A DNA stretch of 64,000 bases, from the NCBI GenBank assembly GCA_964234715.1, contig OZ174277.1. One strand, written 5' to 3'. The DNA is from Podarcis melisellensis. Lineage: Eukaryota. The notes under the pieces were generated by a model, which saw only the letters and a program-made list of their open reading frames with translations, was not told where the DNA came from and ran no database searches. Positions 933 through 62,650 of this stretch are shown piece after piece (position 1 is the first letter of the stretch; each line of letters opens with the position of its first letter). The position numbers and the translations under genes are program-made.

Positions 933-3813
933 GATGTTTTTAGAAACTTGCAAGACCAAATTCCTCTTTACCACACTTCTTGGACCCTTTAGTCTTTTTG
1001 CACTAAATTCTACACATAAAGAAAGGCAAGGATGGTTTGTTTTTTCCAAAGTAGATTGTTTGTTTGTTACGTTGAATCAAGGGTACAGTTCTTAGGCGTA
1101 GCTGTGATCTTTCCCATCACCAGCCCAACCAGAGCTGGGTGATTTTGCGCCCCTGGCAGAACTGTCCAGATTGTGCCCCCTAGCCATGGACAAATTAGCT
1201 CTTCTTTCCGCCTCTCCTCCAACCCCCCCCTCCACCCATTCAGTTCACCCTCTAATTAAAACCTTTTCTTTTGAGGCAATAATCAATATTTTTATTTATA
1301 GACATATTTATGTACATATTTTTAACCAATTTTGTGCCCACCCCTGGCGAGGGCCCACTTTGCCACCCCCTAACTATGGCCCTGACCGAAACCAAAAGCT
1401 ATAAAACAGGCAAACGTTCTAGTTTCAATCCATAAATAGATTGTTGTCCTATCTCTTTGTAAAGTATCTTTACTTCTACTGCCCTTAAGACTCAGCAGCT
1501 GTTAATGGGATTATATAGTTTGGTGTCAAACGCGATAATAGTTCTTAAACGAGCAGGGTCACTATTTTCCTCTGAGAGATAGGCAGAATTACGGTACCTC
1601 CTCTTTGAAACTGCTGCACTTAACAGTTTCCAATTACTTGCAAGGTGTGTCAGCACTGCAGTGCATGCCTGTAGAAATTGCCTGTCCTGTGTGAGTGGTT
1701 GTGCAACATGAGCCAATATCAAAAGTTATGATATGCATCATATCCTGGAAAATGCTCCCCACCCATTTCAGATTGCAGTAATTTACCAAAAATGCTGTTT
1801 AAAGGTAGTAGTTCGTATTTGGTATTATGTAGCTAACCTGCATGGGAGTCTTAGGAACTGCATTTTTGTGGATCCAACCCTCTTTCTCTGTCACTGATAA
1901 GAAGCAATTTCACATCCTCCAGCCATGCCCAAATGTGCAGTTTCCACAGAAGTATGCAAAACCTCAGTTGTTCCCATCAGTAGGAGTCCTCCCCAAAAAA
2001 GTTTCTTTATACAACTTATGCTAACACAACTTAGCCACTGTTGAGCTTCAGTCTCTCTATTTCTGCAGAATAAACCATGCTACTGGCTTAAGTATAGAAC
2101 TGACATATCCATCCTTCCAAAAAGCACCTGGTTTTTTAAATAAAGCAATACATGTTATTTATGCGCAGTATGAACTTGACTTTTATTTTTTTGTTAGCTC
2201 TGGAAAAGATCATTCTATATCGTGGTGGGCATTACATTCTTCATACCTACTTCTTGACAAAGATGATTCCTGTGTATATGTGATGGAATGGAGGTGGACT
2301 CCTGTGAAGGACCAAGTTCACAGATTGGGGCAGGGGAGCCTGTAGAGGGGCAAGGGGGGGGCAGACCCCCTTCCTTCAATCCCCAGCTTGCTTTCCTTCC
2401 TTCCTCAAGTGAGTTTCTAGCATTTGTAGACCCCAAGATGTGCAGGCACTGTTCTCCTCATTTGTTTGATAAGTAACTAGCCTTGTGAGAAATGCCTTTC
2501 AGTGTAATTTTTTGGCTGATTAATGAAGTCATAGTAATTATTGACATTTAAGAAAGCAGACCAAGCTCATTGGGCAAAGAAGACAACAGTGAAATACCTT
2601 TTGGTTTCTTTTTACGCCTTTGCTGCTGGTCTTCCCTATTGGACAAGTGATTTTTGGCCAGCAATTTAGGTACCCAGAATTTTAGTGCACCTGTTTGGAG
2701 TGTGTTAATTGGAAAAAAAGGTAGCAGCGAAGATAAGATGTCATGAACTTTCTAATTTCATTGATTCCAACCCCTGAATTCATAAAAAGTTTTTAAAAAT
2801 TGTCTAATGCCAGTGCTGATAAAGTTATGGGCCATTATTATGCCCACATTACAGAGGTCAAGGCTGTGATTGAGAGAGTATGGGTCATGCCAGCCTCGCA
2901 AAGTCACCCATGTTCTTATATCAATTTTGCTGGGGTGAGCAGGTTGTTAGTGCGTGACAATATTGATGTCTGGCATTGGTCTCCCAGTGTGCTGGGTTTG
3001 TGTTGGGGGGTGGGCTGTGAAATTTTAATAGTGCAGTTAATTAAGCCCTAGAAAGAGTGAAATGAGAAGCCAGGGCAAGAATGGGGGGCTTTCAGCAGTT
3101 GGCACAAAAGTACTGCCCGGATGTCAGACCCATCCATTGCAAAAAACAAAAAAAAAATAAAAAAATGAAACAAAACCCCAGAGTGGCAAGGATCTGGAGT
3201 ACAAGTTTCTCAGGGGCTGAGTCTATCCAGGCCTTTCCTCCATTCAGTCACCAGATCTACCATAAATGATAGACTTGATTTCCAATGCTGGAGGTGTGTG
3301 TTTGTTCTTTGTCAGAAAAATTCTTGGCAGAAGTGGCAAGGAGTGTCTTTTACCAACTTACGGCTATAGCTGTCACTCCAGCTTATGTAGACCAGTCTGG
3401 TCTAGCCTCTGTTACTAATGAACTGGTAACATCCAGAATAGACCAGTGTCATAGCATAGCAGTGTCTATGTGGGGCTGCATTTTGAAGACAATTCAGTAA
3501 TTTTCACTGGGGCAAAATATAGCTGCTGCCCAAATAATGTTGGTGGGGATCAGGTGGTCTGAACTTGTAAAACACATAGTTTACCAATTGCACTGGTTAC
3601 CAGTGTATTACTGAGCCCAATTCAGAGTCTGATGATTACTTTAACCTGGCCCTAAATATTTAGGGTTATAATATGGAGGACTGCATGAAAGATGGCTTTC
3701 TTTGTGGTGGCCCCCAAATTGTGGAGTTCGTTTCCAGCGTCAGTTGATCTAGCACCAGCTTTTGACGTATCTTTACTTTGGCCTTTGACAGTAGTATAAT
3801 ATTACTAGGGGTT

Positions 3814-7867: not shown

Positions 7868-8217
7868 GGGATACTGTTGGCACTGTGTCTTAAACCACTG
7901 AGCCTAGGACTTTCCGATCAGAAGGTCGGCGGTTTGAATCCCCACAACGGGGTGAGCTCCCGTTGTTTGGTCCCTGCTCCTGCCAACCTAGCAGTTCGAA
8001 AGCATGTCAAAGTGCAAGTAGATAAATAGGTACCGCTCTGGTGGGAAGGTAAACGGCATTTCCGTGCGCTGCTCTGGTTCGCCAGAAGCGGCTTAGTCAT
8101 GCTGGCCACATGACCTGGAAGCTGTACGCTGGCTTCCTCTGCCAGTAAAGCGAAATGAGTGCCGCAACCCCAGAGTCGTCCGTGACTGGACCTAATGATC
8201 AGGGATCCCTTTACCTT
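7868..8217 (+). mobile_element. Sauria SINE
   Basis: Same family body with CCTTTACCTTT tail; TSD TACTAGC(A/G)ATAT. Confidence 0.88.
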
Positions 8218-8851
8218 TACTAGCGATATACAAATTTATGGTGCAATATTTAAAACGCTGTATTCCCTAATAGCTATAAATGTTGACACATGATTAGCAG
8301 CTTTTCTGTGAAAAGATTTCAGAAGTTAGGTATGATTTCTCAGTGGTTGTTGCATTTTTCAGGTGTACTGTCTTTGTCTTACAAGAGCTATCAGAACCAA
8401 GCTGTAGGAAGAATGCTAGGTTTTTCACTTGCTGAAATTATTTACTGAAAACAACATAGTGTCCCCCACTCTGGAAGGTTTTGACTGCCTGGACAGCTAA
8501 GACTACATCAGATTAATAAATATATCAGCAGCAGAAAATAAGGTGTGAGCTTCCAAGCTGGGGAAAGCTAGTGATCTGTTTTTGTAGCCAGTAGTTCTGG
8601 GAAAGGTGAGTAGTAATGTTGTGCAGAAGCACCTCTTTAATAGCCTTTTGATGTGTTCAAACAACTGGAGAATTCATAGACAAGACCAACATGACCTACA
8701 TTAGTTTGAGAAGAAAGGTCCAATAGACTCCTAGACCTCATCTGAGTACCGCACATATATTGTTTGCTTTTCTATTCTTCGAAGGAATTCAGGGCGGCAT
8801 GCACTCAGCTGTCTCATTTTATACCTCGCAAAAGACCTGAGAGACTAAATA

Positions 8852-9093
8852 CAGTGGGTACCTTGGTTATCGAACTTAATCCATTCTGAGATTGTGTTCG
8901 ACTCCTGGAACCGTTTGAAAACCAAGGTGCGGCTTCCAATTGGCTGCAGGAACTCCTGCACTCAATCGGAAGCCGAATCGGACGTTCAACTTCTGAAAAA
9001 CATTCGCAAACCGGAACACTCACTTTCAGGTTTGCGGTGTTCAGGAGCCGATTTGTTCAGGAGCCAAAGCGTTTGACAACCAAGGTACCACTG
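8852..9093. mobile_element. Tigger-like MITE
   Basis: TA|CAGTGGGTACCTTGGTT...AACCAAGGTACCACTG|TA. Confidence 0.8.
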
Positions 9094-9525
9094 TACAGTG
9101 GTGACTTGCCCACTTTCACCAAAGGCATACTTCTGGTTTGTAAGAGATTCAAACCAGATTTGCCTCCGGCTCCCTGAGTGCTATCCCACCCTGGTGCATT
9201 CAGGACTCCCTCCCTTTTCAGTTAGATTTGTCCGGTGAGGTGGTCATTGTTCTACTGAGCATAGTGGAAATTTACCAGACAGTTAAAGAACTTGTAAACA
9301 GAACTTGTTAAGAGAAAGTAAATTAAGTTCAAGAGAACCCCTTTCATTAGAAAGAGAGAGAGAACCCAACTTTCCAGTCTGCAAACTGAGGATTTATGCC
9401 ATTCTGTGACATAGAAGATTGACTTGGAAGTGGGCAGAGGCACTGAGAAATGTGGCCCACTAAGTTTCAACCATTTTGGTTTGGCCAGATTACAATGCCA
9501 AAACAATGCCACATAGTCTCTAACA

Positions 9526-9848
9526 CAGGGGTCAGCAAACTTTTTCAGCAGGGGGCCAGTCCACTGTCCCTCAGACCTTGTGGGGGGCCAGATTATATTT
9601 TGAAGGGGGGGAAATGAACGAATTCCTATGCCCCACAAATAACCCAGAGATGCATTTTAAATAAAAGCACACATTCTACTCATGTAAAAACACCAGGCAA
9701 GCCCCACAAATAACCCAGAGATTCATTTTAAATAAAAGCACACATTCTACTCATGTAAAAACATGCTGATCCCCAGACCATCCACGGGCCAGATTTAGAA
9801 GGTGATTGGGCAGGATGCGGCCCCCGGGCCTTAGTTTGCCTACCCATG
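9526..9848. mobile_element. hAT non-autonomous element
   Basis: TIRs CAGGGGTCAGCAAACT / AGTTTGCCTACCCATG; 8-bp TSD CTCTAACA/CCCTAACA; internal ~63-bp tandem duplication (9630-9692, 9701-9763). Confidence 0.8.
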
Positions 9849-12227
9849 CCCTAACAGGAGTAGTAAGCATGTTCAATCCACTGAACCAGAGCTATTGAGT
9901 TGAACAGAAAGCATGGAGGAGGCCTGCTGATTTTTCTCTTTCTAAACGGTTTTGCTCCTGCAAAATGCAGCAATGATGCTAGCATTTTGTGTGTGAACTT
10001 TTTACTTTTAAAATAACAATGTGGATTGTTGCAGCATCTGTTTTGAGCAACATTAAGGGACAGAATGGCTTCCCTTAGGCTATCAGTACAGTATTACTGG
10101 CAAATCTCTTTTGAATTCTTAACGCCTTTTGAACTAGGACAGAGGGTTCTTGGTTAATGAGTGAGTGAACAAAAAGTATTTGTGGTAAAACCATATCTCT
10201 CCTGAGGCAACCATTTGTGAAACTATGTTCAGACATGCTTCTCTAGCTAGAATCTGGCTACGAATGGCACACTTCTAGTGGATATTCACAGTGGAACAAG
10301 TGTCTTTAAAATAAAGGCACACAACAGTTTTGTATGCTTGCAGAGACTATGTTCATACAGAAAATCCTTAAACATGGTGGTACCAGGCTATTTGTGCTAT
10401 GTCTTACCAGCAGTGGAAAAGCCAGTCTTTGAGATACTTCAAAACACAAAAGGTTCAAAACACTGTTAAATGGGTTTGACAGATAAGATGATTCCAAATG
10501 TAATAAATTCAGGGCACTCATTTGTTGTCTTGTTGATAAATAATTTCTAGCAACCTGCCCTTGGTTTTTGCTTCCATGATGGCTAAAATCCATTGTATTG
10601 AAACAGAACTTTTGCTTTCTTTTTCTGTAGTTGATGCTCTTAATTAATATGGTCAGGCAGGATGCCCTCCCTTCATGCTTCTAGTTTATTTAGGGGGGGG
10701 GGAATTATATACCGCTATTCATAAAAATATTAGCAGTTGACAGTCATACATAAAACTATGCAGTAAAAACCATATACAAATTTTAAAATCAGAAATAAGC
10801 TAGCTGTTATGGAAAGATGTATTCTTAATGGCCGGCTGGAATAGAGAAATTTTCAGCAGTATGTCATACAAGACCAGACTAAAAGAAAACTAGATTTCCT
10901 CCCCTTCCTGCAAAATCAGCCACTTTTGGTAGACAAATAACTTCATTCCAAGCTACATACTGCATGAATCTACCTTAAAAGCTACACTTGCTAGGCAAGT
11001 AGGATAGCGCAGCAAACGATGACTGCTGGACTCAGGACCTGCTTGCAGGTTTCCCATAGGTATCTGCTTAGCCACCCAGGATGCTGGGTAGATGACCCTT
11101 TCGTCTGATCTTGTGGGGATTCTCTTAATGTTCTTATGATGGAATGCCTGAGATGGAAAGCATGGGACCCAACACGCAAACACACACATTCACATTGCAA
11201 GTGAGCAAAGACATTCTGTGAGAATGCCACACAAATAAGGTGAGTAGCATTTAGGCCTGGTTTACAATCTGAGGAGTCTATGCAAAGCACATGGGATGCA
11301 AATAAATTTGCTCCAAGATTGCATGGATAATCTTAAAGTTCATCTGTTTGTCTACTGCCTTTGTTGGTAGCCTGAAGGTCAGAATCTTTAGTATCTCCTA
11401 CATTAACAGAGATTTGAGAATTTGTGGTTTAAACAAGCGGCATACCCTATAGGTATAGGCACCTTCTTTCTACAGGGCTTTCCAAGTACAGGATAATACC
11501 AGTTCATTCTCTGCAACTAATTTTATAAAAAACTCAAACTATTTGGTTCGAACCTAGTGCTTTATATTGCATTGCCTCCCTATTTGTTGTCTCTCCTTTA
11601 GCATCTTGTCTTAAAATGCATTATGATAGAAGCTGGCTCGCCTCAGACAGGATTTATGCAGTTCAGAGCAAGGAAAACATGAAACTCAAGAACATCACTG
11701 AGAATGGAGACTAAATCTGGTGACCGTTTGCCAGAGGAAAAAAGGAAGGATAAACAAGATCCAAGAGTGTAAAAACATTTAATAAACTTCTTAATCTCTT
11801 CCTTCTTAATCTGCAGATAGTTTGTGACAGAGGTACAGAACTCAATCCAGGGGTTATGGGTGGGGAGGAAGGGATGAATACTACTTGTAATATAAAAATA
11901 TTTTGGTTTACAATGGTCATTTTTCTTCATTTATAGGAACATCATCATGAGGCTTGGGAATACCTTGACCTGAAATGGGCTGAATCCTGATGACACTGAT
12001 CTAATGTAAGCATACTGAACCTGTTAATCCTCTGGAGATGTTGGAAGCTTTTTGCGTGAGAATTCCCTCCAAAGTATTGCCACACTTTCTGCCTGCAAAG
12101 AAAACACTGGATTTCTAAGAAACTAGTCTCTCCCTAATGCAGTGGATCTCTCCAGGGCCCCCACCTTACATCTGCTTATGAACTTCAGTGCTTGGTTTGC
12201 ATTTGATCCAGGAGAATTCCAAGTGAC

Positions 12228-24200: not shown

Positions 24201-24345
24201 CAGCTTGGCAAATATTAATTTTTAATTTTTGCTATTTATGTTTTACTTTTGGGAGGGAGCTAGCTATGGGTTGTATCTCAAGTTCTCAAAGTTGACCAAC
24301 ATGAGTCCATTAATTTTAATGGGTCTTTTCTGAGTCGGATGTTTG

Positions 24346-24829
24346 TGTTATTCTAAAGCACCAAGGCTGCAGCAAGCAAAGGCAGCACAGTCTGCTGCTT
24401 GTGGCTGGAAAGCCAAACAGGATGTTTGTGACTGTTGCCATGGGAACAAAGGGGCAGTCCATTCTGTACTGAGCACCGGATGTTAGCTCAGTGGGTTTGT
24501 CATATGACCTGTACAGGATGTACATGGGTGAGTTTCTCTCTGTATGTTGAAGAGAGCAGACATGTTTACTGGATGACTGCTGAAAGACACAAATAAAAGG
24601 AGATGTAGATACGTTACTGTCTGTGTCTGATTCCCCTCCCTGGGGATATGCAGGGAGGAGGAGAGAAGGAGAAGCAGTTGGTGTGTTTTCCTCACAGCCT
24701 GAGGAAAATCGCCGGAACGGACCTCGTGTTGTTTATCCTGCCGGGAGTCGCCGGAGGGAGGTCTAAGGAATTCAGCCGGTGCCTGATCAGATAGGCACAT
24801 ACCGATGACCGGGTAGCAGAATTCCAACA
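24346..24829 (+). repeat. 5' LTR
   Basis: TGTTATTC...TTCCAACA, direct repeat of 27856-28339; AATAAA at 24592-24597. Confidence 0.95.
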
Positions 24830-24830
24830 T

Positions 24831-24848
24831 TGGTAGCAGAGGATGGTT
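24831..24848 (+). other. Primer-binding site, tRNA-iMet
   Basis: TGGTAGCAGAGGATGGTT is the reverse complement of the 3' 18 nt of vertebrate initiator tRNA-Met (...AACCATCCTCTGCTACCA), 1 nt after the LTR. Confidence 0.92.
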
Positions 24849-25311
24849 CCTGTTTTCATCGCCCTCTGCATCAAGAAGTGGCTTCCATGGATGCCTGACC
24901 TGAGAAAGCTGATTCTCTGCAGCCAGAAGCTGACCAGAGCAAGCTGGAGGCAAAAGCCACGGAGCCCAGGTATGTGATTTTCGGGCTTAGAAGAGTGGAT
25001 GCAGACTGAGTTATTTCTCTGCTTCGAGGGAGCAGCGTATGGGAAACAGCTCCAGTTAAAAGTGAAACCGCATACCAAACATTCCTGTGGCTTTCTTCTC
25101 CAAGGGATTGGAATGTACTGTTGCTAAGCGACGCCTTTCAGTGAAGGCTAATCCTCAGAGAGGAGAAGTGAAAGCAACAATGGAATGTTTTGACTACAAA
25201 GGCTGAGGAGCTCCTGGAAATTTCCAACGCAGCCAGCGTTGAGAGCTGCCAGGTGCACAGAGTGTAAACAAGCCAGCTATTGGATTTTAGAGGCTTGTGT
25301 TTTGAGAGTCA

Positions 25312-27996
25312 ATGCAAGGACTCACAATGGATGCCAAGAAGGGGGGAGCTTTGCCTTCTCCGCCCCTTTTGACCAGTGACAATTATGCATCTTGGTCTAT
25401 TAAGATGAAGGCTCTGCTGCAGAATCAGAGACTGTTTGACGTGATAGAGAACCCCATTCCTGCAGCGCCAACGCGTGCTTGGGAGTCACAGGATGTGAAG
25501 GCCAGAACTGCCATAATTCTGTGCGTGTCAGATTCGCAGTTGATCCACATACAAGGCTTAGAGCACGCGAGAGATGTTTGGAACACGCTGAGAAGGACAC
25601 ATCAGAGAGATGCAGGTTCTTCAGCGTTGCTGTATTTTGAGAAGCTGACCAACCTGAGGCTTGCGCCTGATGGAGATGTTCAAGCGCACCTGACGGAAAT
25701 GAAATTTCTGCGTCAACAGATGGTGGAACGCAATTTCCGTTTGCAGGAGGAAGTGTTTTGCTTCATGGTGATCAACAGCCTGAATCGGACTTACAAAACA
25801 GTTGCCAGTCAGCTGGGGTCTCTCCCAGCGAATGATCTCACGTCGGAGAGGGTCTTTGCCGTCGTGTTGAATGAACATGACAGGCTTGCAGCCCTGGACG
25901 TGAAGGACAGAGGGAGGGAAGAACGGAGTTCTAACGCCCCCACTGCTCAAGCTACTGGAGGAGATGCTGTAGCTATGAACGTTGTCCGATGTTACAATTG
26001 TGACCAGACTGGGCATATTCAGCGGAACTGTACGAAGCCACGTCGGAAGAAAGGAGCCAAGGGAAGCTCCACAAAGTCTGACACGTCAGACAAAGGTCAC
26101 ACCAAGCCAAAGGCAAAGACTGCAAAGGCTTTGATGTCGCTAAAAGCCACACCAGAAGCGGGGAATTTCTTTGTTTTGGATACTGGAGCCACAGTTCACA
26201 TGACGGGACACAGAGGACTGTTTTCTACGTTTAAGAAGCAAAGCTTCGCTGTACAACAAGCCAACGGTCAAAAGCTGGAAGCGACCGGAATTGGGACTGT
26301 ATATCTTAAAAGTCTGAACTTGACTATAAACAATGTTTATTTGGTTCCAGAGTTGAAGTTTAATCTGCTCAGCGCTTCGCAGATTGCCAAGAAGGGACTG
26401 AAACTGTCCTATGATGATGAGAAATGCGAGATCTACAAAGATGGAGAGCTGTATCTTTCTGCCAAAGAGAAAGATGGACTGTATTTGTTGACTTTTGATC
26501 AAAGTGATTACATGAAATGTAATTCTTGTGATTCTAACATGATCTCTTTTGCAGGTGTAGCTGAGAAGGACGCCAAGCAGGTGACCTCGAGGGGCAAAAG
26601 AGCATTTCAGCGGGTGTATGCTGATGTGATTGGTCCTTTAGAACCATCTAGAGGCAATGCAAAGTATTACCTAATATGTGTTGATTCTTTTACAGGTTTT
26701 ATCTGGATTTATCTTTTGGAGAGACCGAAAGAAGCCTTAGAAAGGTTTAAGGAGTTTTGTGACAAGGTTAAAAATATGCATGATGCTGACATAGATTGTC
26801 TTTGCACAGATGAGAAGCCAATTTTTCTTTTACAGGAGTTCCAGAGGTTCCTGAAGAAGAAAGGGATAAAACACAAACTTGCAGCTTCCGAAGAAGCTTG
26901 GAATAGATGTGTTTGTGTTAGGGTGAACAAAGAATTGCATAAGGGAATGCATGCGCAATTACTTAGTTCACATCTGCCACATGAGTACTGGGCTGAATCG
27001 CTAATGTCATATTGTTATACCTGGTTGAGAAAGTTTTCAAAAGAGTTGGGAAGTTCTCCTTTTGAGAAACTGTTCCACAGAAAACCTTCTGTTGCCCATT
27101 TCAAGGTTTTTGGGTCTCATGTGAGAACAGAAGCTCCAGGTGGAGTAAAGAATGCCAGAGGCATTTTTGTGGGTTATGAAAAGGGTCTCTACAGAGTAAT
27201 TTTGTCTGAATCTGGAAAGGTGATTCTCACAAAATTTCTAGAGAGTGCTCCTGAACAAGAGAGAGTGATTGTTCACACATTTCCCACAGGTGATGATGAT
27301 TCTGATGATGATGATGATGATGTTGATTTTATTGAGTTCAGTAGTACTGATGATGACAGCGATAGCTCAGAAAGCTCAGTTGTCACAGTCATTGAGAGGA
27401 AATCTCACACAATGACTAGACCCTCAGAAGAGGAGGATGAACCACTGATTAAGCTTAGTACTGGTTCTCCAGAGAGTTCAAAGGCTGAACCAGAAAGTAG
27501 AGAAGAGCAGCACCTCTTACGTAGGTCTGAGAGAGCAACGAAGGGTGTACCACCCAAGAGGTATTCACAAGAGTTTGCTTACTTAGCTGTTGCTGTTGTA
27601 AACGACCAAGGTCAGATTGAAGCTGTGTCTGAGTCAGAGACAAAGGCACAACAGAGAATTGTTAACCAAGGTAATGCAGAAGCACTCATTCCTTGGAAGT
27701 CACACAACCAGAGAGGTACATTGGTAAAACCAGTGGCGGGTAGTTCCAAGGGTGGAACTGAAACAACAGGGGAATGTTATAAGTATAACAACTGTTTGTT
27801 TTCTTCTCTGGATGACGCTTTGCTCGCAGCACGCATTGATACTTTAGGGGGAGGATGTTATTCTAAAGCACCAAGGCTGCAGCAAGCAAAGGCAGCACAG
27901 TCTGCTGCTTGTGGCTGGAAAGCCAAACAGGATGTTTGTGACTGTTGCCATGGGAACAAAGGGGCAGTCCATTCTGTACTGAGCACCGGATGTTAG
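25312..27996 (+). CDS. Copia-type Gag-protease-(pseudo)integrase polyprotein, 894 aa
   Basis: Gag N-terminus (NYASWSIKMKALL), UBN2-like core, CCHC knuckle CYNCDQTGHIQRNC (25990-26031), aspartic protease LDTGAT (26179), rve-like ADVIGP...VDSFT...TDE, and GIFVGYEKGLY. No YxDD RT or RNase H. The second ATG (25327, ACAATGG) has the better Kozak context. Confidence 0.88.
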   Translation: MQGLTMDAKKGGALPSPPLLTSDNYASWSIKMKALLQNQRLFDVIENPIPAAPTRAWESQDVKARTAIILCVSDSQLIHIQGLEHARDVWNTLRRTHQRDAGSSALLYFEKLTNLRLAPDGDVQAHLTEMKFLRQQMVERNFRLQEEVFCFMVINSLNRTYKTVASQLGSLPANDLTSERVFAVVLNEHDRLAALDVKDRGREERSSNAPTAQATGGDAVAMNVVRCYNCDQTGHIQRNCTKPRRKKGAKGSSTKSDTSDKGHTKPKAKTAKALMSLKATPEAGNFFVLDTGATVHMTGHRGLFSTFKKQSFAVQQANGQKLEATGIGTVYLKSLNLTINNVYLVPELKFNLLSASQIAKKGLKLSYDDEKCEIYKDGELYLSAKEKDGLYLLTFDQSDYMKCNSCDSNMISFAGVAEKDAKQVTSRGKRAFQRVYADVIGPLEPSRGNAKYYLICVDSFTGFIWIYLLERPKEALERFKEFCDKVKNMHDADIDCLCTDEKPIFLLQEFQRFLKKKGIKHKLAASEEAWNRCVCVRVNKELHKGMHAQLLSSHLPHEYWAESLMSYCYTWLRKFSKELGSSPFEKLFHRKPSVAHFKVFGSHVRTEAPGGVKNARGIFVGYEKGLYRVILSESGKVILTKFLESAPEQERVIVHTFPTGDDDSDDDDDDVDFIEFSSTDDDSDSSESSVVTVIERKSHTMTRPSEEEDEPLIKLSTGSPESSKAEPESREEQHLLRRSERATKGVPPKRYSQEFAYLAVAVVNDQGQIEAVSESETKAQQRIVNQGNAEALIPWKSHNQRGTLVKPVAGSSKGGTETTGECYKYNNCLFSSLDDALLAARIDTLGGGCYSKAPRLQQAKAAQSAACGWKAKQDVCDCCHGNKGAVHSVLSTGC
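27846..27855 (+). other. Polypurine tract
   Basis: AGGGGGAGGA directly abutting the 3' LTR; Copia-type PPT. Confidence 0.88.
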
Positions 27997-28339
27997 CTCA
28001 GTGGGTTTGTCATATGACCTGTACAGGATGTACATGGGTGAGTTTCTCTCTGTATGTTGAAGAGAGCAGACATGTTTACTGGATGACTGCTGAAAGACAC
28101 AAATAAAAGGAGATGTAGATACGTTACTGTCTGTGTCTGATTCCCCTCCCTGGGGATATGCAGGGAGGAGGAGAGAAGGAGAAGCAGTTGGTGTGTTTTC
28201 CTCACAGCCTGAGGAAAATCGCCGGAACGGACCTCGTGTTGTTTATCCTGCCGGGAGTCGCCGGAGGGAGGTCTAAGGAATTCAGCCGGTGCCTGATCAG
28301 ATAGGCACATACCGATGACCGGGTAGCAGAATTCCAACA
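27856..28339 (+). repeat. 3' LTR
   Basis: Identical to the 5' LTR, preceded by the PPT and followed by the TSD. Confidence 0.95.
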
Positions 28340-31300
28340 GTTTGTTGGGGGGGGCGAGCCCCTGCCCCAATCTTGAGGGATCAGAGGATGCTGAGTGCAA
28401 GAGAGAAGGAGCTGCCATTGAAGCTGCACCGTGCTGGGCTCCGCACTCAGCTTCCTCCCAAACAATGCGCATGTGCTGTGGCCTGACGCCACTGCCAGCC
28501 CCCTGCCTGCAAACATGCCTAGACCGCCTTGGTCTGCGCTGTCACCCACCCACAAGTGTGCTCAGGCCACCTTGGTGGGCTGCATCATTGTGAGGAAGCC
28601 TCTTTCAACTGGTTGGTTGTTGGTTTTTTGGTCACTGGTCAAGTGTTTTGAGAAATAAAAGGCTGCAAAAGACTTCCAGTGATAGGCTGGAATCACTCAG
28701 AGGTCTACTCTTACACAACATGGACCCTTAGGCTTGTGAGGGGAAGGTGAAGCAGCAAGGCATGAGGAATTATGGGTAGCGGTAGCAACTGGGAAGGCAG
28801 CTACAGAAGGGCTCTCATAATTCGTGCAGACTTCAGTGCTAAAGTAGGACGGAATTAGTACTGATTTAGAGTAGGGCAGTGTAAATGTGGTGACTGATTG
28901 GAGTTATTGTTTCTTTCAAGGTGGCCTGTAAGCATACACAGTTACTGCCATAATGAAATTATCCTAATGAAGGCATTGGATCACTTTTACTACTGGATTG
29001 TCTATTTTATACGTACAGCTGGGATGTATTACCCAGAGTGGAGAGGAGACATTTGTTAAATTGATTCGGCAGACTCATTTTATGTATTCTTAGTATAAGA
29101 GCTTCAGCTCTGATTAATAGGCCACGTGCAGTTGCCATCTTAAGTTTCAATACCAAATAATTTGTGACGCTGCTTATTCAATGAGGGAAGTTTTCAAAAT
29201 GCCACCTGCTATGTTCCTTTAAGCCTTTCAATGGCAAGCTATTCTGAAGCACTCTAAAATGAAAATGTATTTACTTTCCCCATGCAAATCTGAGAATGAG
29301 GCACTTATTCCCCCCTCCCCCATTTTGTTCACTCAGCTTCTGTTTGCATGTGTTGCAGATATAAGTTTGTGCTGGCTCTTATCAAATTAGGCTGAGTTCT
29401 GGACTAACCCATCAGATTGGTCCTCTTTTCCAACAACCTTTATATTTTAACATGGCAAATAATAATAATAATAATAAATAATATAGCATATTATTTTAAA
29501 TACACACACAACTGTTTGTGGGATATTTAATCCAGATTTTGTCTGGAGTCTGTACCCCAGTATAACTATTACAAGATTGCTGAGCTTTCTACAGAACCTT
29601 TTCATATGGATTATTCATATGAAAGAAGGCATAGATGTTTGCAGCCATCTCTTCTGGCCCTTTATTTTTCAGGTGGCATCTTGTCTTCAAGTCTGATGTT
29701 TCTGCTGTTAAAATACCAGGCTAGTGCACAGTAAGACCACTCATTCATGATTGAGCACCATGTGGGGTGGGGAGGAGTCACTGTTGAGGAAGCATGCATG
29801 AGAAGATTGTGATGTCAGGGTATCTTCGCATAAAAGTGATAAATTTTCTGTTGCTTCCTCCAGTAGCTGTAAATCTGCATTGGCCAGAATGCTCATTTGC
29901 ATTACAAATACCCACTCCTCAGCATTTCTCTTTAGCAGAGGTTAACAATAATAGTATCTCAAAAGTGACTTGGAGTCTTGCGTGTGGAAACAGGTAACTG
30001 GTGCCATCCTAGAATGCCTGCAGCACTATCATTTTTTGCATTTTTGTGAAGGATTTTACTTATTGTATGTAAGCTACTCTGGGAGCCAATCTTACCTGAA
30101 ATACATGGTACAAGTGTGATCTTAAGTACATATGTATCTAATAAAGCAAAGTTAAGGGAGTGTTGAATTAAAACAAAGTTTATGGAGGTGGTCCTGTTCT
30201 TCAGAAAATAACTACTTTTCAGAGAATCAAAACTGCTAAATTGTTTCAATTCAATGCATGTGCTCCTATAACTGCACACAAATGAAATAATGTTTGCTTA
30301 GTAGGGGAAGAGACTTAGCTCCAGGCAACCTTGTGTACACGGAGAAATCAAGTCCCTCACTTGTTACATTTTGATAGATTTAATCATTCATCTTTAGAAA
30401 TAGCGATAGAAGCATGCGGAGACTTGACAAAGTTTGCTGGTGGCTCAAATCAATGCCAATGTCTGTGGCAAAATAGATTCAACGTCCACTTGTTAGAGTA
30501 TCTGTTTTTGTAGAAACTGTGCAGAAGTGAAGGGAACTGGGAGGGGTGGTATGCTGTGCTTCGAAACCTGCGCTGAGAGTGAAGGAAGGCCTGTGAAGAA
30601 AAAAATCAAAGTGTCTTGGAGATGCTAATCCCAAGTACACCAAAAGCAAGTTTTGCTTAGGTTTTTTTTTTAAAAAATAAAATAAAAATGCACCTGTAGT
30701 CACTTTACATATGTTGCGTGCCATCCCAATCTCCAAGCGGTGGAAGATTCCAAGTGTTCCAGACATGCCTACCCAGGATCCATGTTTCCTTTTGGAAATG
30801 AGGCACAGCAGAGACTGTGGTATCTTTAGGATATATGGTTTCTTTACAGACATGCATATAACCTGGCCTGCAGTGGAGGGCATCACAGCAACAACACTCC
30901 AGTAGGGTCTTGCTTCTCCCATAGGTACAGCTCTGGATTCAAACCTGCATCAGCCATGGCTCTGACCCTCTCCTCAGCTTGCCGCCTTTAATGGACTGCC
31001 ACCTTTTCCCTCGCAGCCACATTCCATCCAACTCTAAACTCTGAATACTGACTTTTGTTCTTCTAATTAACTCTGAGCAGAGCGAGAGGTTCCACCCACT
31101 TGCTGTCTGGCAAAGATGTTGCCTTCTCAAGGGGTCATTACCTTCCCTTTCTTAATGGCTCGTCTCCCAGGCAATTCAATAGAATCTGTGCTGAATCCAG
31201 GAATTAGAAGGGAGATCCAGGCATTCAGCCTACCACCCACAAAACCCCTCATAACACTTAATAATAACTTGAGAACAAGAAACAGTTACACACATGAACA

Positions 31301-50158: not shown

Positions 50159-50915
50159 CTATGCTCGAGTCTCCTCTTTGTTCGATCCTCCTGGGTTTTT
50201 ATCCTTAACTACACTGTCTTGCAGATCTGTTGATATATTAGTTGAATCGCTTTTACAGTCACGGCAATCTTTTTCTACAAGTTCTGCATTTCTGCAGTCT
50301 TGATTAAGGTTTTCATCATTTTTGCCTTTATGTTTTTTAAGATGGCAAACGTTCTCCTTCTGGTTCGAAGGATTAGCAGTTTCTTCCAGTATGGAGTTCT
50401 GACAATCAGCATTGCTATTCTTTTCACCAATGCTTTGCTTAACAACCTCAGGGCTGGCGTGTTTCCTGCTCCGGTCACAATCGTCATCCTTTTTAGCATG
50501 TTCTGCCCTTTTTTCATTGGTTGCTTTGCCGCTTGAGTTACAAACCACGGGCACATTCTTGCATTCTCTCCCACTTTTATGTTTAGAAACGTAACCGCTG
50601 CGGAGGGAAACTGGCGATGCCAGCTTTTTACTCGGCTTGCTTCCTTCCAACTTCTGCTTCCTCGGCGGCCCCCATATGAAGTGGTCAGAGGGTGTGTAGT
50701 GCTGCTGGGCAAACCGCAGGAGTTTCCTCCTCTCTCTCCGGTCTCTAATAGTATATACAAAATATTCCAAAGCGCTTTGCTTAATGTTGGAGATGGTGTC
50801 TTCCACAAGAGCTTCGTGAAGAATGAATTTTACAAGAGGAGGTTTGAAACTCTCGTACCCAAGTTCGCCAAGACTCTTCAGAATACGGGTGATCCTCAAG
50901 TAGTTATGTTGGGAC
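50159..50915 (-). CDS. OGFRL1: OGFRL1 exon 7 (coding part, TAG stop)
   Basis: CACAG| SQHNYLRITRILKSLGELGYESFKPPLVKFILHEAL...FIWGPP then a charged tail. The seven exons sum to 1611 nt, an open frame of 536 aa. Confidence 0.94.
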
Positions 50916-57921: not shown

Positions 57922-59279
57922 TTATTATTTATACCCCGGCCATCTGGCTGGGCCTCCCCAGCCACTCTGGGCGGCTTCCATAAAAACCAAAAATACAGTA
58001 AAATCACACGTTAAAAACTTCCCTGAACAGGGCTGCCTTAAGATGTCTTCTGAATGTCAGGTAGTTGTTTATTGCTTTGACATCTGCTGGAAGGGCGTTC
58101 CACAGGGTGGGTGCCACTACCGAGAAGGCCCTCTGCCTGGTTCCCTGTAGCTTTGCTTCTCGCAATGAGGGAACCGCCAGAAGGCCCTCGGCGCTGGACC
58201 TCAGCGTCCGGGCAGAATGATGGGGGTGGAGACGCTCCTTCAGGTATACTGGACCGAGGCCGTTTAGGGCTTTAAAGGTCAGCACCAACACTTTGAATTG
58301 TGCTCGGAAACGTACTGGGAGCCAATGTAGGTCTTTCAAGACCGGTGTTATATGGTCTCGGCGGCCGCTCCCAGTCACCAGTCTAGCTGCCGCATTCTGG
58401 ATTAGTTGTAGTTTCCGGGTCACCTTCAAAGGTAGCCCCACGTAGAGTGCATTGCAGTAGCCCAAGTGGGAGATAACCAGAGCATGCACCACTCTGGGGA
58501 GACAGTCCGCAGGCAGATAGGGTCTCAGCCTACGTACCAGATGGAGCTGGTAAACAGCTGCCCTGGACACAGATTTGACCTGTGCCTCCATGGACAGCTG
58601 TGACTTCAAAATGACTCCCGGGCTGCGCACCTGGTCCTTCAGGGGTACAGTTACCCCATTCAGGACCAGGGAATCCTCCACACCTGCCCGCCTCCTGTCC
58701 CCCAGAAACAGTACTTCTGTCTTGTCAGGATTCAACCTCAATCTGTTAGCCGCCATCCATCCTCCAACCGCCTCCAGACACTCACACAGGACCTTCACTG
58801 CCCTCACTGGTTCTGATTTAAAAGAGAGGTAGAGCTGGGTATCATCTGCATACTGAGGAACACCCAGCCCAAACCTCCTGATGATCTCTCCCAGTGGCTG
58901 CATGTAAATGTTGAAAAGCATGGGGGAGAGGACAGAACCCGGAGGCACCCCACATGTGAGAGCCCAGGGGTCTGAACACTCATCCCCCACCACCACTTTC
59001 TGAACACGGCCCAGGAGGAAGGAGCGGAACCACTGTAGGACAGTGCCCCCAGCTCCCAGCCCCTCAAGACGGTCCAGAAGGATGTTATGGTCGATGGTAT
59101 CAAACGCCGCTGAGAGATCCAGCAGAACTAGGAAACAGCTCTCACCTTTGTCCCTAGCCCGCCGGAGATCATCAACCAGTGCGACCAAGGCAGTTTCAGT
59201 CCCATGATGAGGCCTGAATCCCGACTGGAAGGGATCCAAATGGTCCGCTTCTTCCAGGCGTGCCTGGAGTTGTTCAGTA
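57870..59279 (-). mobile_element. L2/CR1-clade LINE, 5'-truncated, in OGFRL1 intron 1
   Basis: 411-aa open RT frame (QSGFRPHHGTETAL, LLDLSAAFDTIDH, GVPPGSVLSP, YADDTQLY) followed by an (ATT)n tail. Confidence 0.92.
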
Positions 59280-60207: not shown

Positions 60208-61299
60208 TTTGTACCATTGATTTCAGTAGGATTTACTTTTGAGTAAATGTGCATAGGACTGTGATGTAAGATCCCTGTTGGAATGCAGTCAGAAAATAAA
60301 ACACAGATCCATACCTTTTGTACTGTGCAAATATACATATGGGAATACTGAATGGCAAAACTGCCTAAAAAGTGCCCCACTTATCACATGAGCCAGGCTA
60401 ATATGTGGAGGTACAGTTTCAATAATAATAATTCTCTACAGAGATGAAAGCATGAGGTGGAAACATAAGGACAGTGGTCTTCAGTTTAATGTTTGTTAAG
60501 AGACAGAAAATAATTCCATGGAGGTAATGATTGAAAATAGAGTCCACGTTGCATTCAGGGTAAGAGTATTTTTTTTAAAAAGTAAAAAGCTGATAATATG
60601 ATCTAGCCTAGAGTTGAATAAGGAGGAGGCAAGTAACTCTCTTTTCTTTGAATAATCTCCTTATTTCTTGGGTTTATGAGTTCTTTTGGTCCTGCACAGT
60701 GATGTGTTGTCTAATACGTGCAATCATAGCTGTAGTTACACTCAGCCAGAATGTCAAATAAGCCCTGTTCTGAAACTGCATTTTGTCACCACATGTGCTA
60801 CTGTAATTTCTATCCCCTGAACAGGCAGGCATGTGATGGGGGGATGATTATACCAAGGAAACAGAGAAGATTAGAACTACTTTGACCTTCTGCATTTTAA
60901 AGCCACCAGAATCTTTTTTCTAAAAGAGAAGATATAAAGCTCTGCTGAACAGCTTGCCAGAGGGAAAATGAATAAATCCCCCACCCCACCCCACCGTTCC
61001 TCCTTGCTACGCATGTCACAGGAAGGAAAACAAAAATCAGGCTGGATCAGCAAGCTGGTAACAAAATACAGCAAACCTGCCAGGCCAGAGTGCTTCGCTT
61101 CCTTGGTCTTCTTTCCTTTGATTGCCACACGCCTCAAATCCATATTTAGCTTCTTTTTTAACCCTACTAAGAATATGATGATGATGATAACAACAACAAC
61201 AAGGATGATGCAGCCACAGCTTGGCTCCTGAGTCACACTGCATGGGGGGGGGGAGGAAAAAAGGGGAAATGGAGAAAGCTGAAAGTGGAAATGTATATT

Positions 61300-62650
61300 T
61301 ATCTCTGTCTCTCTCTCACGCACGCGCGCGCACACGCACCCCAAGCGTTTGCAACCATGGTGTCCAAAAGTCCCCTGCTGCTGCATTCCGAGACTCTGGC
61401 GCACACCTGCCCCTGAACAGAGGGAGGGGAGGCACACAATCTTGGAGAGGCACCAGCACTGGCGGGGGGGGGGGCAGAGGCAATGGCGCTGAGGGGGGAG
61501 GGCTCCAGACACCGCCCCCCCCCATAGCCCCCTGGAGAAGTTTGCAGCGTCCCGAGTTACCTGCTCGGTGCTGGCGGCCTCCGCTTCGTCGTGCCTCCCT
61601 CCCTCTTGATCCTCGCCTTCCTCTTCCTCCTCCTCCTCTTCCTCGTCGTCCTCGTCTTCCTCGAGCTCCTCTTCTTCAGGCTCCTCAGCAACCCCTTCTC
61701 TGGGCTCGGCGTCTTCCGGCCGGCAGCTTGCCGCAGGGAGCGGTTCCCCCTGCTGCTGCTGCTGCTGTTCGTCCTCAGCTGGGTCGCCGCCGCCGCCGCC
61801 TCCTTCTTCTCCGCCCCCCAGCCCCTCGAGCGGCGTCCCTTCTTCCCCTCCGGAGTCCTGGAGCTCGGGCTCGGAGTCCGTCTCCCAGGTAGAGTCGCAG
61901 TCCTCCACCGTGGTGGGCTCCTTGAAGCTGACCCCGCTCAGCAAACTGCCCATTGGGAGAGGCAACGCAGGAGCCTCTCTCTCCCGCCCGGGGAGGACGG
62001 GGGAGGGAGCGCGCGCCCAGGGGAAAGAGGGGAAGGTCGCTCGGTCCGTCCGTAGGTAGGTAGGTAGGTTCCGCGAGCAGGCTAAGAATGCCGCTGCCGC
62101 CGCCGCCACCACCTCTGCTGCTCCTCCTGCTGCTCCGGCTGGGGCATGGTTGGCAGCGCCGGGAGGCCGCAGGCAACGCGAAGGAGGCTGGCGAAAAAGA
62201 CGACGACGACGAGGAAGACGGAGGCAGGCGCAAGCGGCTGAAGCGGCAGCAGGCGATGCTCTGCTCCTCCTCAGCCAGTCTCTCTCTCACCCACCCACCC
62301 CCAACCCACAGACACGCGCCGTGGGAAGGAGGAGCCGAGCGTTTGGGATTTCCACAGGAAATAGTTCAGCCCGCCCAGCGCCCCCTGAACGGCGGCGGCA
62401 GTAGCAGAGCGCAGCTGCCGCGCAAAAGAGGAACCTGGAGCGGACGGAGCGCTTCTCCGTGGCGGGGAAGGGGCGCCTTACGCAACCAGAACTTTCTATA
62501 GAGACGGGCAGGCGGGCGCGCGCTTAGTTTTATCCGGGAGCATTCCAAGGCGCGAGGGAGACGGTGCCCCGGGACCCCGGAGTCCCCTTGCGGACGGTGG
62601 TGGCGTTGTTACCTCCGCTCTAGATGCAGGTGACTTGCGGGCAGCAATGG
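61300..62650. promoter_or_regulatory. CpG island / OGFRL1 promoter and 5' UTR
   Basis: Abrupt GC- and CpG-rich stretch over exon 1 and upstream, with GC boxes (GGCGGG/GGGCG). Boundaries approximate. Confidence 0.8.
61561..61953 (-). CDS. OGFRL1: Opioid growth factor receptor-like 1, coding exon 1
   Basis: ATG at 61953 gives MGSLLSGVSFKEPTTVEDCDSTWETDSE, recognisable as the OGFRL1 N-terminus. Ends at the donor CAG|GTAACT; 393 nt, phase 0. Confidence 0.93.

Follow-up and report, generated by a model that had tools for sequence, protein, structure and literature searches.

A probably non-catalytic, selected integrase-derived domain in a non-autonomous Ty1/Copia-type element of Podarcis and Zootoca lizards

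What keeps an integrase reading frame open once the active site of the enzyme has gone? The question is raised by a 64,000-nucleotide stretch of Podarcis melisellensis DNA (contig OZ174277.1 of assembly GCA_964234715.1), referred to here as the window; position 1 is its first letter, and coordinates given without a locus name are those of the window, on the + strand unless stated otherwise. A complete Ty1/Copia-type long terminal repeat (LTR) element of 3,994 bp lies at 24346-28339. Its single open reading frame (ORF) of 894 codons (25312-27996) encodes Gag, a protease (PR), an integrase-derived region designated IN*, and a C-terminal tail. A Pfam scan of this ORF returned neither reverse transcriptase (RT; RVT_2) nor ribonuclease H (RNase H), and the element is therefore a non-autonomous derivative of Ty1/Copia rather than an autonomous member. 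The initial annotation had flagged 26500-27240, within the element, as an integrase turned pseudoenzyme and proposed long selection for a non-catalytic role. The lesions shared between copies, dN/dS below 1, and the open frame all support such selection, the role itself being a proposal; IN* is very probably a selected, non-catalytic, integrase-derived domain of an element that is mobilised in trans.

The relatives against which IN* can be read come from an exhaustive HMMER search among 1.84 billion representative proteins. The nearest are misannotated gene models of Podarcis lilfordi and P. muralis (77-83% identical), joined by further Podarcis copies, P0013, P0018, and P0165. Next stands P0014 from Zootoca vivipara (869 aa; 42% identity over the full length), with the same Gag-PR-IN*-tail layout, followed by P0015 and three near-identical proteins from Logan assemblies (845 aa; 38% identical), which are also RT-less; the integrase of P0015 looks intact, with HHCC, D, D, and E all kept. 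A profile of the RT-less clade recovered no further relatives. At the Zootoca locus (L001) the LTRs are identical over their full ~290 nt and the ORF is intact, and a P. lilfordi copy on another chromosome (L003, the locus of P0013) has a truncated 3′ LTR, its two LTRs showing 2 mismatches over 458 nt.

In the window copy, both catalytic aspartates are retained, D438 as GAT at 26623-26625 and D500 as GAT at 26809-26811, and the glutamate position is occupied by valine (V536; GTT, 26917-26919), two base changes from GAA or GAG, just as the initial annotation had read these codons. BLASTP against an autonomous Copia protein, two MAFFT alignments, and a hidden Markov model alignment of 168 proteins all place the three residues on the D, D, and E columns. 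The pairing of TDEKPIF with the canonical SD(N/R)GGE(Y/F), and of WNRCVCVRVN with QQNGVAERxN, likewise holds. DDE is found in 155 domain hits of the 168-protein set; DDV (Podarcis) and GNV (Zootoca) are limited to this lizard clade, with triad codons of GGT, AAT, and GTT in Zootoca as against GAC, GAC, and GAG in P0015. As the annotation had anticipated for the family, the change from glutamate to valine and the loss of the N-terminal zinc domain are common to all sampled Podarcis copies (P0001, P0013/L003, P0018, and P0165) and to Zootoca P0014; the valine codon itself differs synonymously between Podarcis copies, being GTT in the window and GTA in L003.

The damage extends beyond the triad. 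Scores against the Pfam integrase core profile (rve) are 24.9 bits for the window, 18.4 for Zootoca, and 43.6 for P0015, at a gathering cut-off of 32.6. Among 50 positions that are at least 80% conserved in 148 DDE Copia integrases, 40 are kept in P0015, 25 in the window copy, and 20 in Zootoca, and the lost positions concentrate in the N-terminal domain and in the DxGxE and PQQNG-x-x-E motifs. Residues of the fold-determining type are retained (GP 441-442, D458, GI 518-519, N539, W560, E562, P583, E585, FG 600-601, and GY 621-622). Other positions have taken on derived residues that are common to Podarcis and Zootoca (e.g., K472 to P, P529 to A, and N572 to L); as these are shared, and then conserved, in both genera, IN* may have been remodelled after the loss of catalysis.

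The zinc finger was initially described as half lost, with the histidine pair missing and CNSC surviving as the cysteine half. The loss of the histidines stands; the survival of the cysteines does not. Both halves fall inside a deletion of about 50 residues relative to P0015, and a gap of the same size separates this segment from autonomous Copia proteins. CNSC lies in the remnant at the former HHCC zinc domain (aa 396-429; 26497-26598), and at its position two other Podarcis copies have CNSA and Zootoca has CFNV. Since it sits within the deletion, is not conserved, and belongs to a segment that evolves neutrally (below), CNSC cannot reliably be taken for the surviving CC pair. At 26498-26605, contigs of three species join with about 92-106 nt skipped or replaced; besides evolving neutrally, the N-terminal remnant is thus where the structure of the family varies most. 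The order of loss in the clade is RT and RNase H first (P0015 type), the zinc domain and the glutamate second (Podarcis type), and both aspartates last (Zootoca type).

Whether the altered domain has been under constraint since then was assessed by Nei-Gojobori dN/dS with bootstrap between the window copy and L003. The lesions are present in both copies, so that every difference between the two arose after catalysis had been lost, and the problem of an imprint of past selection, raised for the Athila elements (PMC2410132), is therefore avoided. As the initial annotation had expected, dN/dS lies below 1 in the integrase domain: it is 0.31 (95% confidence interval [CI] 0.19-0.53) in the catalytic-core-like domain (aa 430-585; 26599-27066), which is delimited by alignments, structure prediction, and Foldseek, and 0.09 (95% CI 0-0.32) in the SH3-like integrase C-terminal domain (aa 586-645; 27067-27246). 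Fisher tests on synonymous against non-synonymous counts gave p=1.3e-5 for the core and p=6.5e-8 for the core plus the SH3-like domain. In the same pair, Gag has a dN/dS of 0.09 (95% CI 0.05-0.15) and PR one of 0.23 (95% CI 0.13-0.40); the remnant at aa 396-429 has 1.22 (95% CI 0.48-4.1), and 0.96 in comparison with Zootoca.

Downstream of the core, the SH3-like domain carries GIFVGYEKGLYR, scores 24.5 bits with Pfam SH3_retrovirus (slightly below the 27-bit cut-off), and is 95% identical in amino acids to the Podarcis copies L003 and P0001. It is followed by an acidic Asp/Ser-rich linker (aa 646-733; 27247-27510) that varies in length between copies while staying in frame (dN/dS 0.38, 95% CI 0.17-1.05), by the motif RRSERATKGVPPKRY (RRSER; aa 737-751; 27520-27564), which sits at the integrase-RT junction in autonomous Copia, and by the tail (aa 753-847; 27568-27852). 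GIFVGYEKGLYR and RRSERATKGVPPKRY had been noted as retained and are indeed strongly conserved. RRSER plus tail together give 0.55 (95% CI 0.23-1.66); the motif alone has a dN/dS of about 0.1 and shares 78-81% amino acid identity with Zootoca and P0015 as against 37-42% overall, and it lies in one of the few short segments where the DNA of the element can still be aligned with L001 and the P0015-family contig L002. The tail aligns to that of Zootoca with 41% amino acid identity and a dN/dS of about 0.3. At the Zootoca distance, where synonymous sites are saturated, amino acid identity is 47% for the integrase core, 47% for PR, 41% for Gag, and 22% for the N-terminal remnant. The frame is free of stops and frameshifts across its 894 codons, as originally reported; when the 232 observed substitutions were placed randomly in the region from PR to tail, a neutral simulation expected 8.7 stops and gave a probability of 0.0002 for none. 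On this codon evidence, the catalytic-core-like fold and the SH3-like domain are under purifying selection in lineages that bear the lesions, as are Gag, the protease, and the RRSER motif; selection on a domain that has lost catalytic residues is what makes IN* a pseudoenzyme.

The rate at which IN* has evolved changes on the tree at the point where catalysis was lost. A maximum-likelihood tree of Gag, PR, and integrase resolves ((window, L003), Zootoca), P0015 with 100% bootstrap at each node, and branch lengths were re-estimated per partition on this fixed topology. The ratio of integrase to Gag-plus-PR branch length is 0.66 in the autonomous part of the tree and 0.52 on the P0015 terminal branch. 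On the stem of the IN* clade, along which the glutamate and the zinc domain were lost, it is 3.73, about 5.6 times the normal ratio, and it is 0.64 on the Podarcis stem and 1.31 on the Zootoca branch, where both aspartates were lost. A burst at the loss of catalysis followed by ordinary constraint argues for a change of function rather than decay. Pairwise comparisons agree: Gag and PR of the window element are as close to five autonomous elements as those are among themselves, whereas its integrase core is not (27% versus 45%).

Structure prediction gives the retained residues a plausible context. The AlphaFold2 model of aa 396-660 has a five-strand, helix-rich, RNase-H-like core with block-mean predicted local distance difference test (pLDDT) values of 74-94 over most of its length, lower at the C-terminal end, and a beta-rich, SH3-like part after it. 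The best Foldseek matches are core-plus-C-terminal-domain structures of prototype foamy virus and Rous sarcoma virus integrases (E ~1e-11). The predicted domain thus has the RNase-H-like core and SH3-like domain of a retroviral-type integrase, and it lacks the D,D-35-E triad, the HHCC domain, and a Pfam score above the gathering threshold that would make it a retroviral-type DDE enzyme.

Selection could in principle have acted on the open frame alone, for translation of the downstream SH3-like domain, RRSER motif, and tail or for avoidance of mRNA decay, leaving the integrase core as a spacer. The strongest constraint does lie downstream (0.09 in the SH3-like domain and about 0.1 in RRSER), and aa 396-429 behave exactly as a spacer should. 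A spacer is nevertheless expected to show dN/dS near 1, and the interval around the 0.31 of the core excludes that value; moreover, the fold-determining residues GP 441-442, D458, GI 518-519, W560, E562, P583, and E585 are kept, Podarcis and Zootoca share derived residues, and the core is modelled with confidence. That the core merely fills space is accordingly quite improbable.

The insertion itself is young and carries the marks of normal integration. The 5′ LTR (24346-24829; 484 bp, with TGTT...AACA ends) and the 3′ LTR (27856-28339; 484 bp) are 100% identical, and the target-site duplication (TSD) GTTTG lies at 24341-24345 and again at 28340-28344. Direct LTRs with TG..CA ends and a 5-bp TSD are as expected of Copia, and clean LTR ends with a TSD of this length are the signature of a working Copia-type integrase. 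An insertion pathway independent of integrase has been described for Tf1 (PMC11042837); for this copy it was rejected on account of the clean ends and the 5-bp TSD. Contigs of four public runs were compared with the site and its flanks, the type of run X15 being only a guess. In X1, which bears the same species label as the best holders of the element, an empty-site contig skips 3,999 nt (the element plus one TSD) at full flank depth, and the site is also empty in X7 and X8, two other organisms. Because of these empty sites, the insertion is held to be very recent; it is private or polymorphic. The identical LTRs and the empty allele in X1, X7, and X8 mean that the element has transposed recently although its own enzymes are missing, as trans-mobilisation entails. 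In all three DNA runs, contig depth summed over the element is ~1000 times that of single-copy flanks, a figure that is not a copy number and that suggests an abundant family of roughly a thousand copies.

Abundance and recent activity also bear on the reading of IN* as a dominant-negative competitor of the helper integrase or as a host restriction factor resembling p22 of Ty1, which is a truncated Gag inhibitor. Such an inhibitor is classically a subunit that has lost its catalytic activity but can still multimerise, and the core fold of IN* is, as modelled, preserved. The family, however, is abundant, depends on a helper, and is currently inserting with normal integrase-type ends, and because it needs the helper itself, poisoning integration would be self-defeating; a host factor would be a fixed single-copy gene and not a multi-copy mobile family with polymorphic insertions. 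Both versions are very improbable, and a host-domesticated gene was likewise rejected, the family being multi-copy, LTR-flanked, and polymorphic.

Neutral decay is no more credible. Under it, IN* would be a relic whose frame is open only since the copy is young and the deletion derivative recent. The copy is indeed very young, the N-terminal remnant is neutral (dN/dS about 1.2), and 28 variant rows from contigs had given 12 synonymous against 16 non-synonymous changes (p=0.067), a count since superseded by the codon alignments. Those alignments, which compare copies already bearing the lesions, yield 0.31 for the core and 0.09 for the SH3-like domain; the absence of stops has a neutral probability of 0.0002, 47% identity to the Zootoca lineage persists despite saturated synonymous sites, and the integrase rate returned to normal after its burst. 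The codon data thus largely refute a neutral relic, which is now highly improbable. Least probable of all is an integrase still active through other acidic residues such as the EE of ASEE (aa 527-528), the exception that the initial annotation itself had named: both aspartates persist in all Podarcis copies and, in the window copy, two glutamates precede V536 by 8-9 residues, but EE is no substitute catalytic pair because it is not conserved, reading QE in other Podarcis copies, QA in Zootoca, and RS in P0015. Zootoca, moreover, has a G,N,V triad and yet an intact ORF between near-identical LTRs, IN* is devoid of the zinc domain that intasome assembly requires, and the DxGxE and PQQNG motifs are replaced.

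If IN* is a selected non-catalytic domain, the transposition cycle of the element could be pictured as follows. RT, RNase H, and the chemistry of integration would be supplied in trans by autonomous Copia elements, and IN* would be kept as a structural subunit that binds nucleic acid or a partner. It might multimerise through its core fold, with the SH3-like domain, the acidic linker, and the basic RRSER motif binding the element's own RNA or cDNA, the helper integrase-RT, or both. By such binding, the genome of the element would be brought together with the borrowed enzymes inside particles for which the element itself supplies both the Gag and the processing protease. RT of Ty1 needs contacts with the C-terminus of integrase. 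A specific RNA- or Pol-binding role of IN* is conceivable and somewhat short of likely.

Several points weigh against the interpretation of IN* as a selected non-catalytic domain of a trans-mobilised element. The binding or scaffold role is one that we infer indirectly, and none of the listed runs is on record as RNA from which expression could be read. The SH3-like part of the model has pLDDT values of only 44-59, and the AlphaFold2 input alignment held real integrases, which biases the prediction towards an integrase fold. The within-Podarcis dN/dS values derive from one pair of copies, and L003, the partner in that pair, has two one-base gaps in its Gag-PR linker; these may mean a dead copy or assembly errors from Oxford Nanopore Technologies (ONT) reads, the P. 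lilfordi assembly that carries L003 being ONT-based (PMC10214862). The broken Gag-PR junction of L003 was bridged with X only. Between window 25312-27855 and L003:3265-5764, dS declines along the element, from 0.96 in Gag through 0.55 in PR, 0.43 in the integrase core, and 0.25 in the SH3-like domain to 0.10 in the tail, a gradient suggestive of recombination between subfamilies or of constraint at the DNA or RNA level near the 3′ end. As for the helper, RT-bearing Copia proteins rank after the RT-less relatives among the 1.84 billion representatives, at ~25-31% identity, and the one autonomous-like Podarcis Copia considered, L004, is not supported as a helper: its primer-binding site (PBS) is of another type, it has no DNA similarity to the window element, and only the LTR termini TGTT and CCAACA are in common.

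L004:7509-12456 is in its own right a young, autonomous-like P. lilfordi Copia element of 4,948 bp, with identical 376-bp LTRs and the TSD AAGTG; its PBS matches an internal part of the initiator tRNA-Met (tRNAiMet), and its frame is broken inside the integrase core, leaving ORFs at 7911-9623 and 9977-12064. A bolder proposal is that IN* is a purpose-evolved docking module that captures the integrase-RT of an unrelated autonomous Copia element into particles of the element's own Gag, perhaps in a two-component system with a Gag-less, Pol-only Copia. This is unlikely; were it true, the genome of a retrotransposon might be split between two mutually dependent elements.

The rest of the element is that of an ordinary Copia relative. 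The Pfam order in the ORF (Retrotran_gag_2, zf-CCHC, Pol_BBD, rve, and SH3_retrovirus) puts protease before integrase, as is typical of Copia. The PBS, TGGTAGCAGAGGATGGTT, lies at 24831-24848, one base past the 5′ LTR, and is presumably complementary to the 3′ end of the vertebrate initiator tRNA-Met; a 16-mer of it also follows the 5′ LTR in L003 and in L001. Copia-type Gag (Retrotran_gag_2, 83.8 bits) spans aa 32-192 (25405-25887), a zf-CCHC knuckle aa 226-242 (25987-26037), and the protease-type beta-barrel (Pol_BBD, 69.6 bits) aa 287-362 (26170-26397). The D-T-G of the protease is intact at aa 290-292 (26179-26187), D290 and G292 being invariant in one of the MAFFT alignments. The ORF ends 47 codons into the 3′ LTR, which adjoins the polypurine tract AGGGGGAGGA at 27846-27855. 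Pfam assigns no origin to the tail: a search with aa 753-847 gave zero matches at E<=10, and the reading of this segment as an RT remnant, which had arisen since MAFFT placed it opposite RT motifs, was dropped for that reason.

Among the relatives, L001 has a leader at 3675-3717 with a two-part tRNAiMet-complementary site, in which a short insert separates an 18-mer from a second block. An almost identical PBS-like stretch, followed by an A run, lies directly after its 3′ LTR (L001:6856-6899), and no simple TSD is therefore readable there; a tandem or recombinant arrangement may account for the duplication. The P0015 family (runs ERR14657248 and ERR14657514) is represented by contigs L002:1-3153 and L005:1-3766, which differ by 6 synonymous and 3 non-synonymous changes. 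The ends of L005 are identical over 30 nt, read as two LTRs collapsed into one by assembly, and the PBS of this family is complementary to an internal part of tRNAiMet.

No gene exactly equal to the window ORF is on record, and ORFs of the family have been annotated as host genes, for example as 'vomeronasal type-2 receptor 26-like' in both P. lilfordi and P. muralis and as 'FAM168A isoform X1' in Zootoca; the Zootoca element (L001:4001-6610) lies inside the span of the FAM168A gene call. P0002 is chimeric, joining an element ORF to real vomeronasal type-2 receptor exons. In practical terms, ORFs of the element contaminate lizard gene sets. Within the window, the only other match to the element is that of the LTR-encoded end of the ORF to the 5′ LTR copy. 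ORFs within 50159-50899 (- strand) and 58004-59239 (- strand) match, respectively, OGFr_N (the N-terminal conserved region of the opioid growth factor receptor; Pfam, 117 bits) and an RT fragment of long interspersed nuclear element type (RVT_1, 98 bits), and a 411-codon ORF at 60877-62112 (- strand) has no Pfam match.

Parts of this picture are already known, namely LTR families without pol that keep selected ORFs, and non-catalytic functions of integrase in human immunodeficiency virus type 1 (HIV-1). BARE2 is a Gag-only type of partner to an autonomous element. RLG_Quinta, of the Cereba/Quinta pair, is the Gag-only partner of an autonomous element (PMC11302176), and the pol-less Athila families of Arabidopsis studied by Marco and Marin in 2008 have ORFs under purifying selection (PMC2410132). 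Like the window element, the members of this group are non-autonomous, have complete LTRs, no RT, and selected ORFs, and are thought to be mobilised by autonomous relatives. They differ in keeping Gag, or Gag plus Env, with no remnant of Pol, whereas the window element has Gag, an apparently intact protease, and IN*; it is also a vertebrate Copia-type element and not a plant Gypsy element.

Active Copia insertions occur in squamates, such as the OCA2 insertion of the corn snake (PMC4657000). Autonomous squamate Ty1/Copia elements share with the window element TG..CA LTRs, a 5-bp TSD, a tRNAiMet-related PBS, Copia-type Gag, PR before integrase, and the RRSxR...P.RY motif; unlike them, the window element is without RT, RNase H, HHCC, and the catalytic glutamate. 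Closer is the P0015 lineage, grouped with it at 100% bootstrap, which likewise has a Gag-PR-integrase protein ending soon after RRSER and no RT. It differs in keeping HHCC and D,D,E, in scoring above the rve cut-off, in its internal-tRNAiMet PBS, and in having no long tail.

The best-documented precedent for what IN* could be doing is HIV-1 integrase. Its tetramer is described as binding genomic RNA through basic residues of the C-terminal domain and as being needed, independently of catalysis, in core maturation and reverse transcription (PMC7671690, PMC9144474, and PMC12552619). In the 'class II' phenotype, core and basic SH3-like domain do an essential non-catalytic job. HIV-1 integrase is, however, also the enzyme, whereas in IN* the enzymatic function has been given up and the remaining role is deduced. 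A search of the literature turned up neither an active transposon family whose catalytically dead integrase is maintained by purifying selection nor any account of this RT-less clade of lizard Copia elements.

Non-autonomous LTR elements are usually viewed as protein-less hitch-hikers or as Gag-only partners. The lizard clade shows a stepwise path instead, in which the IN* domain has been under selection, in abundant and currently active families, throughout the stepwise loss of enzymes. The structural job of a retroelement integrase is here separated from its enzymatic job in nature, a separation made in HIV-1 only by engineered class II mutants. In this clade, therefore, nature provides a setting for two questions: which tasks an integrase has other than integration, and by what route an element that parasitises other parasites comes by the RT and integrase of distantly related helpers.

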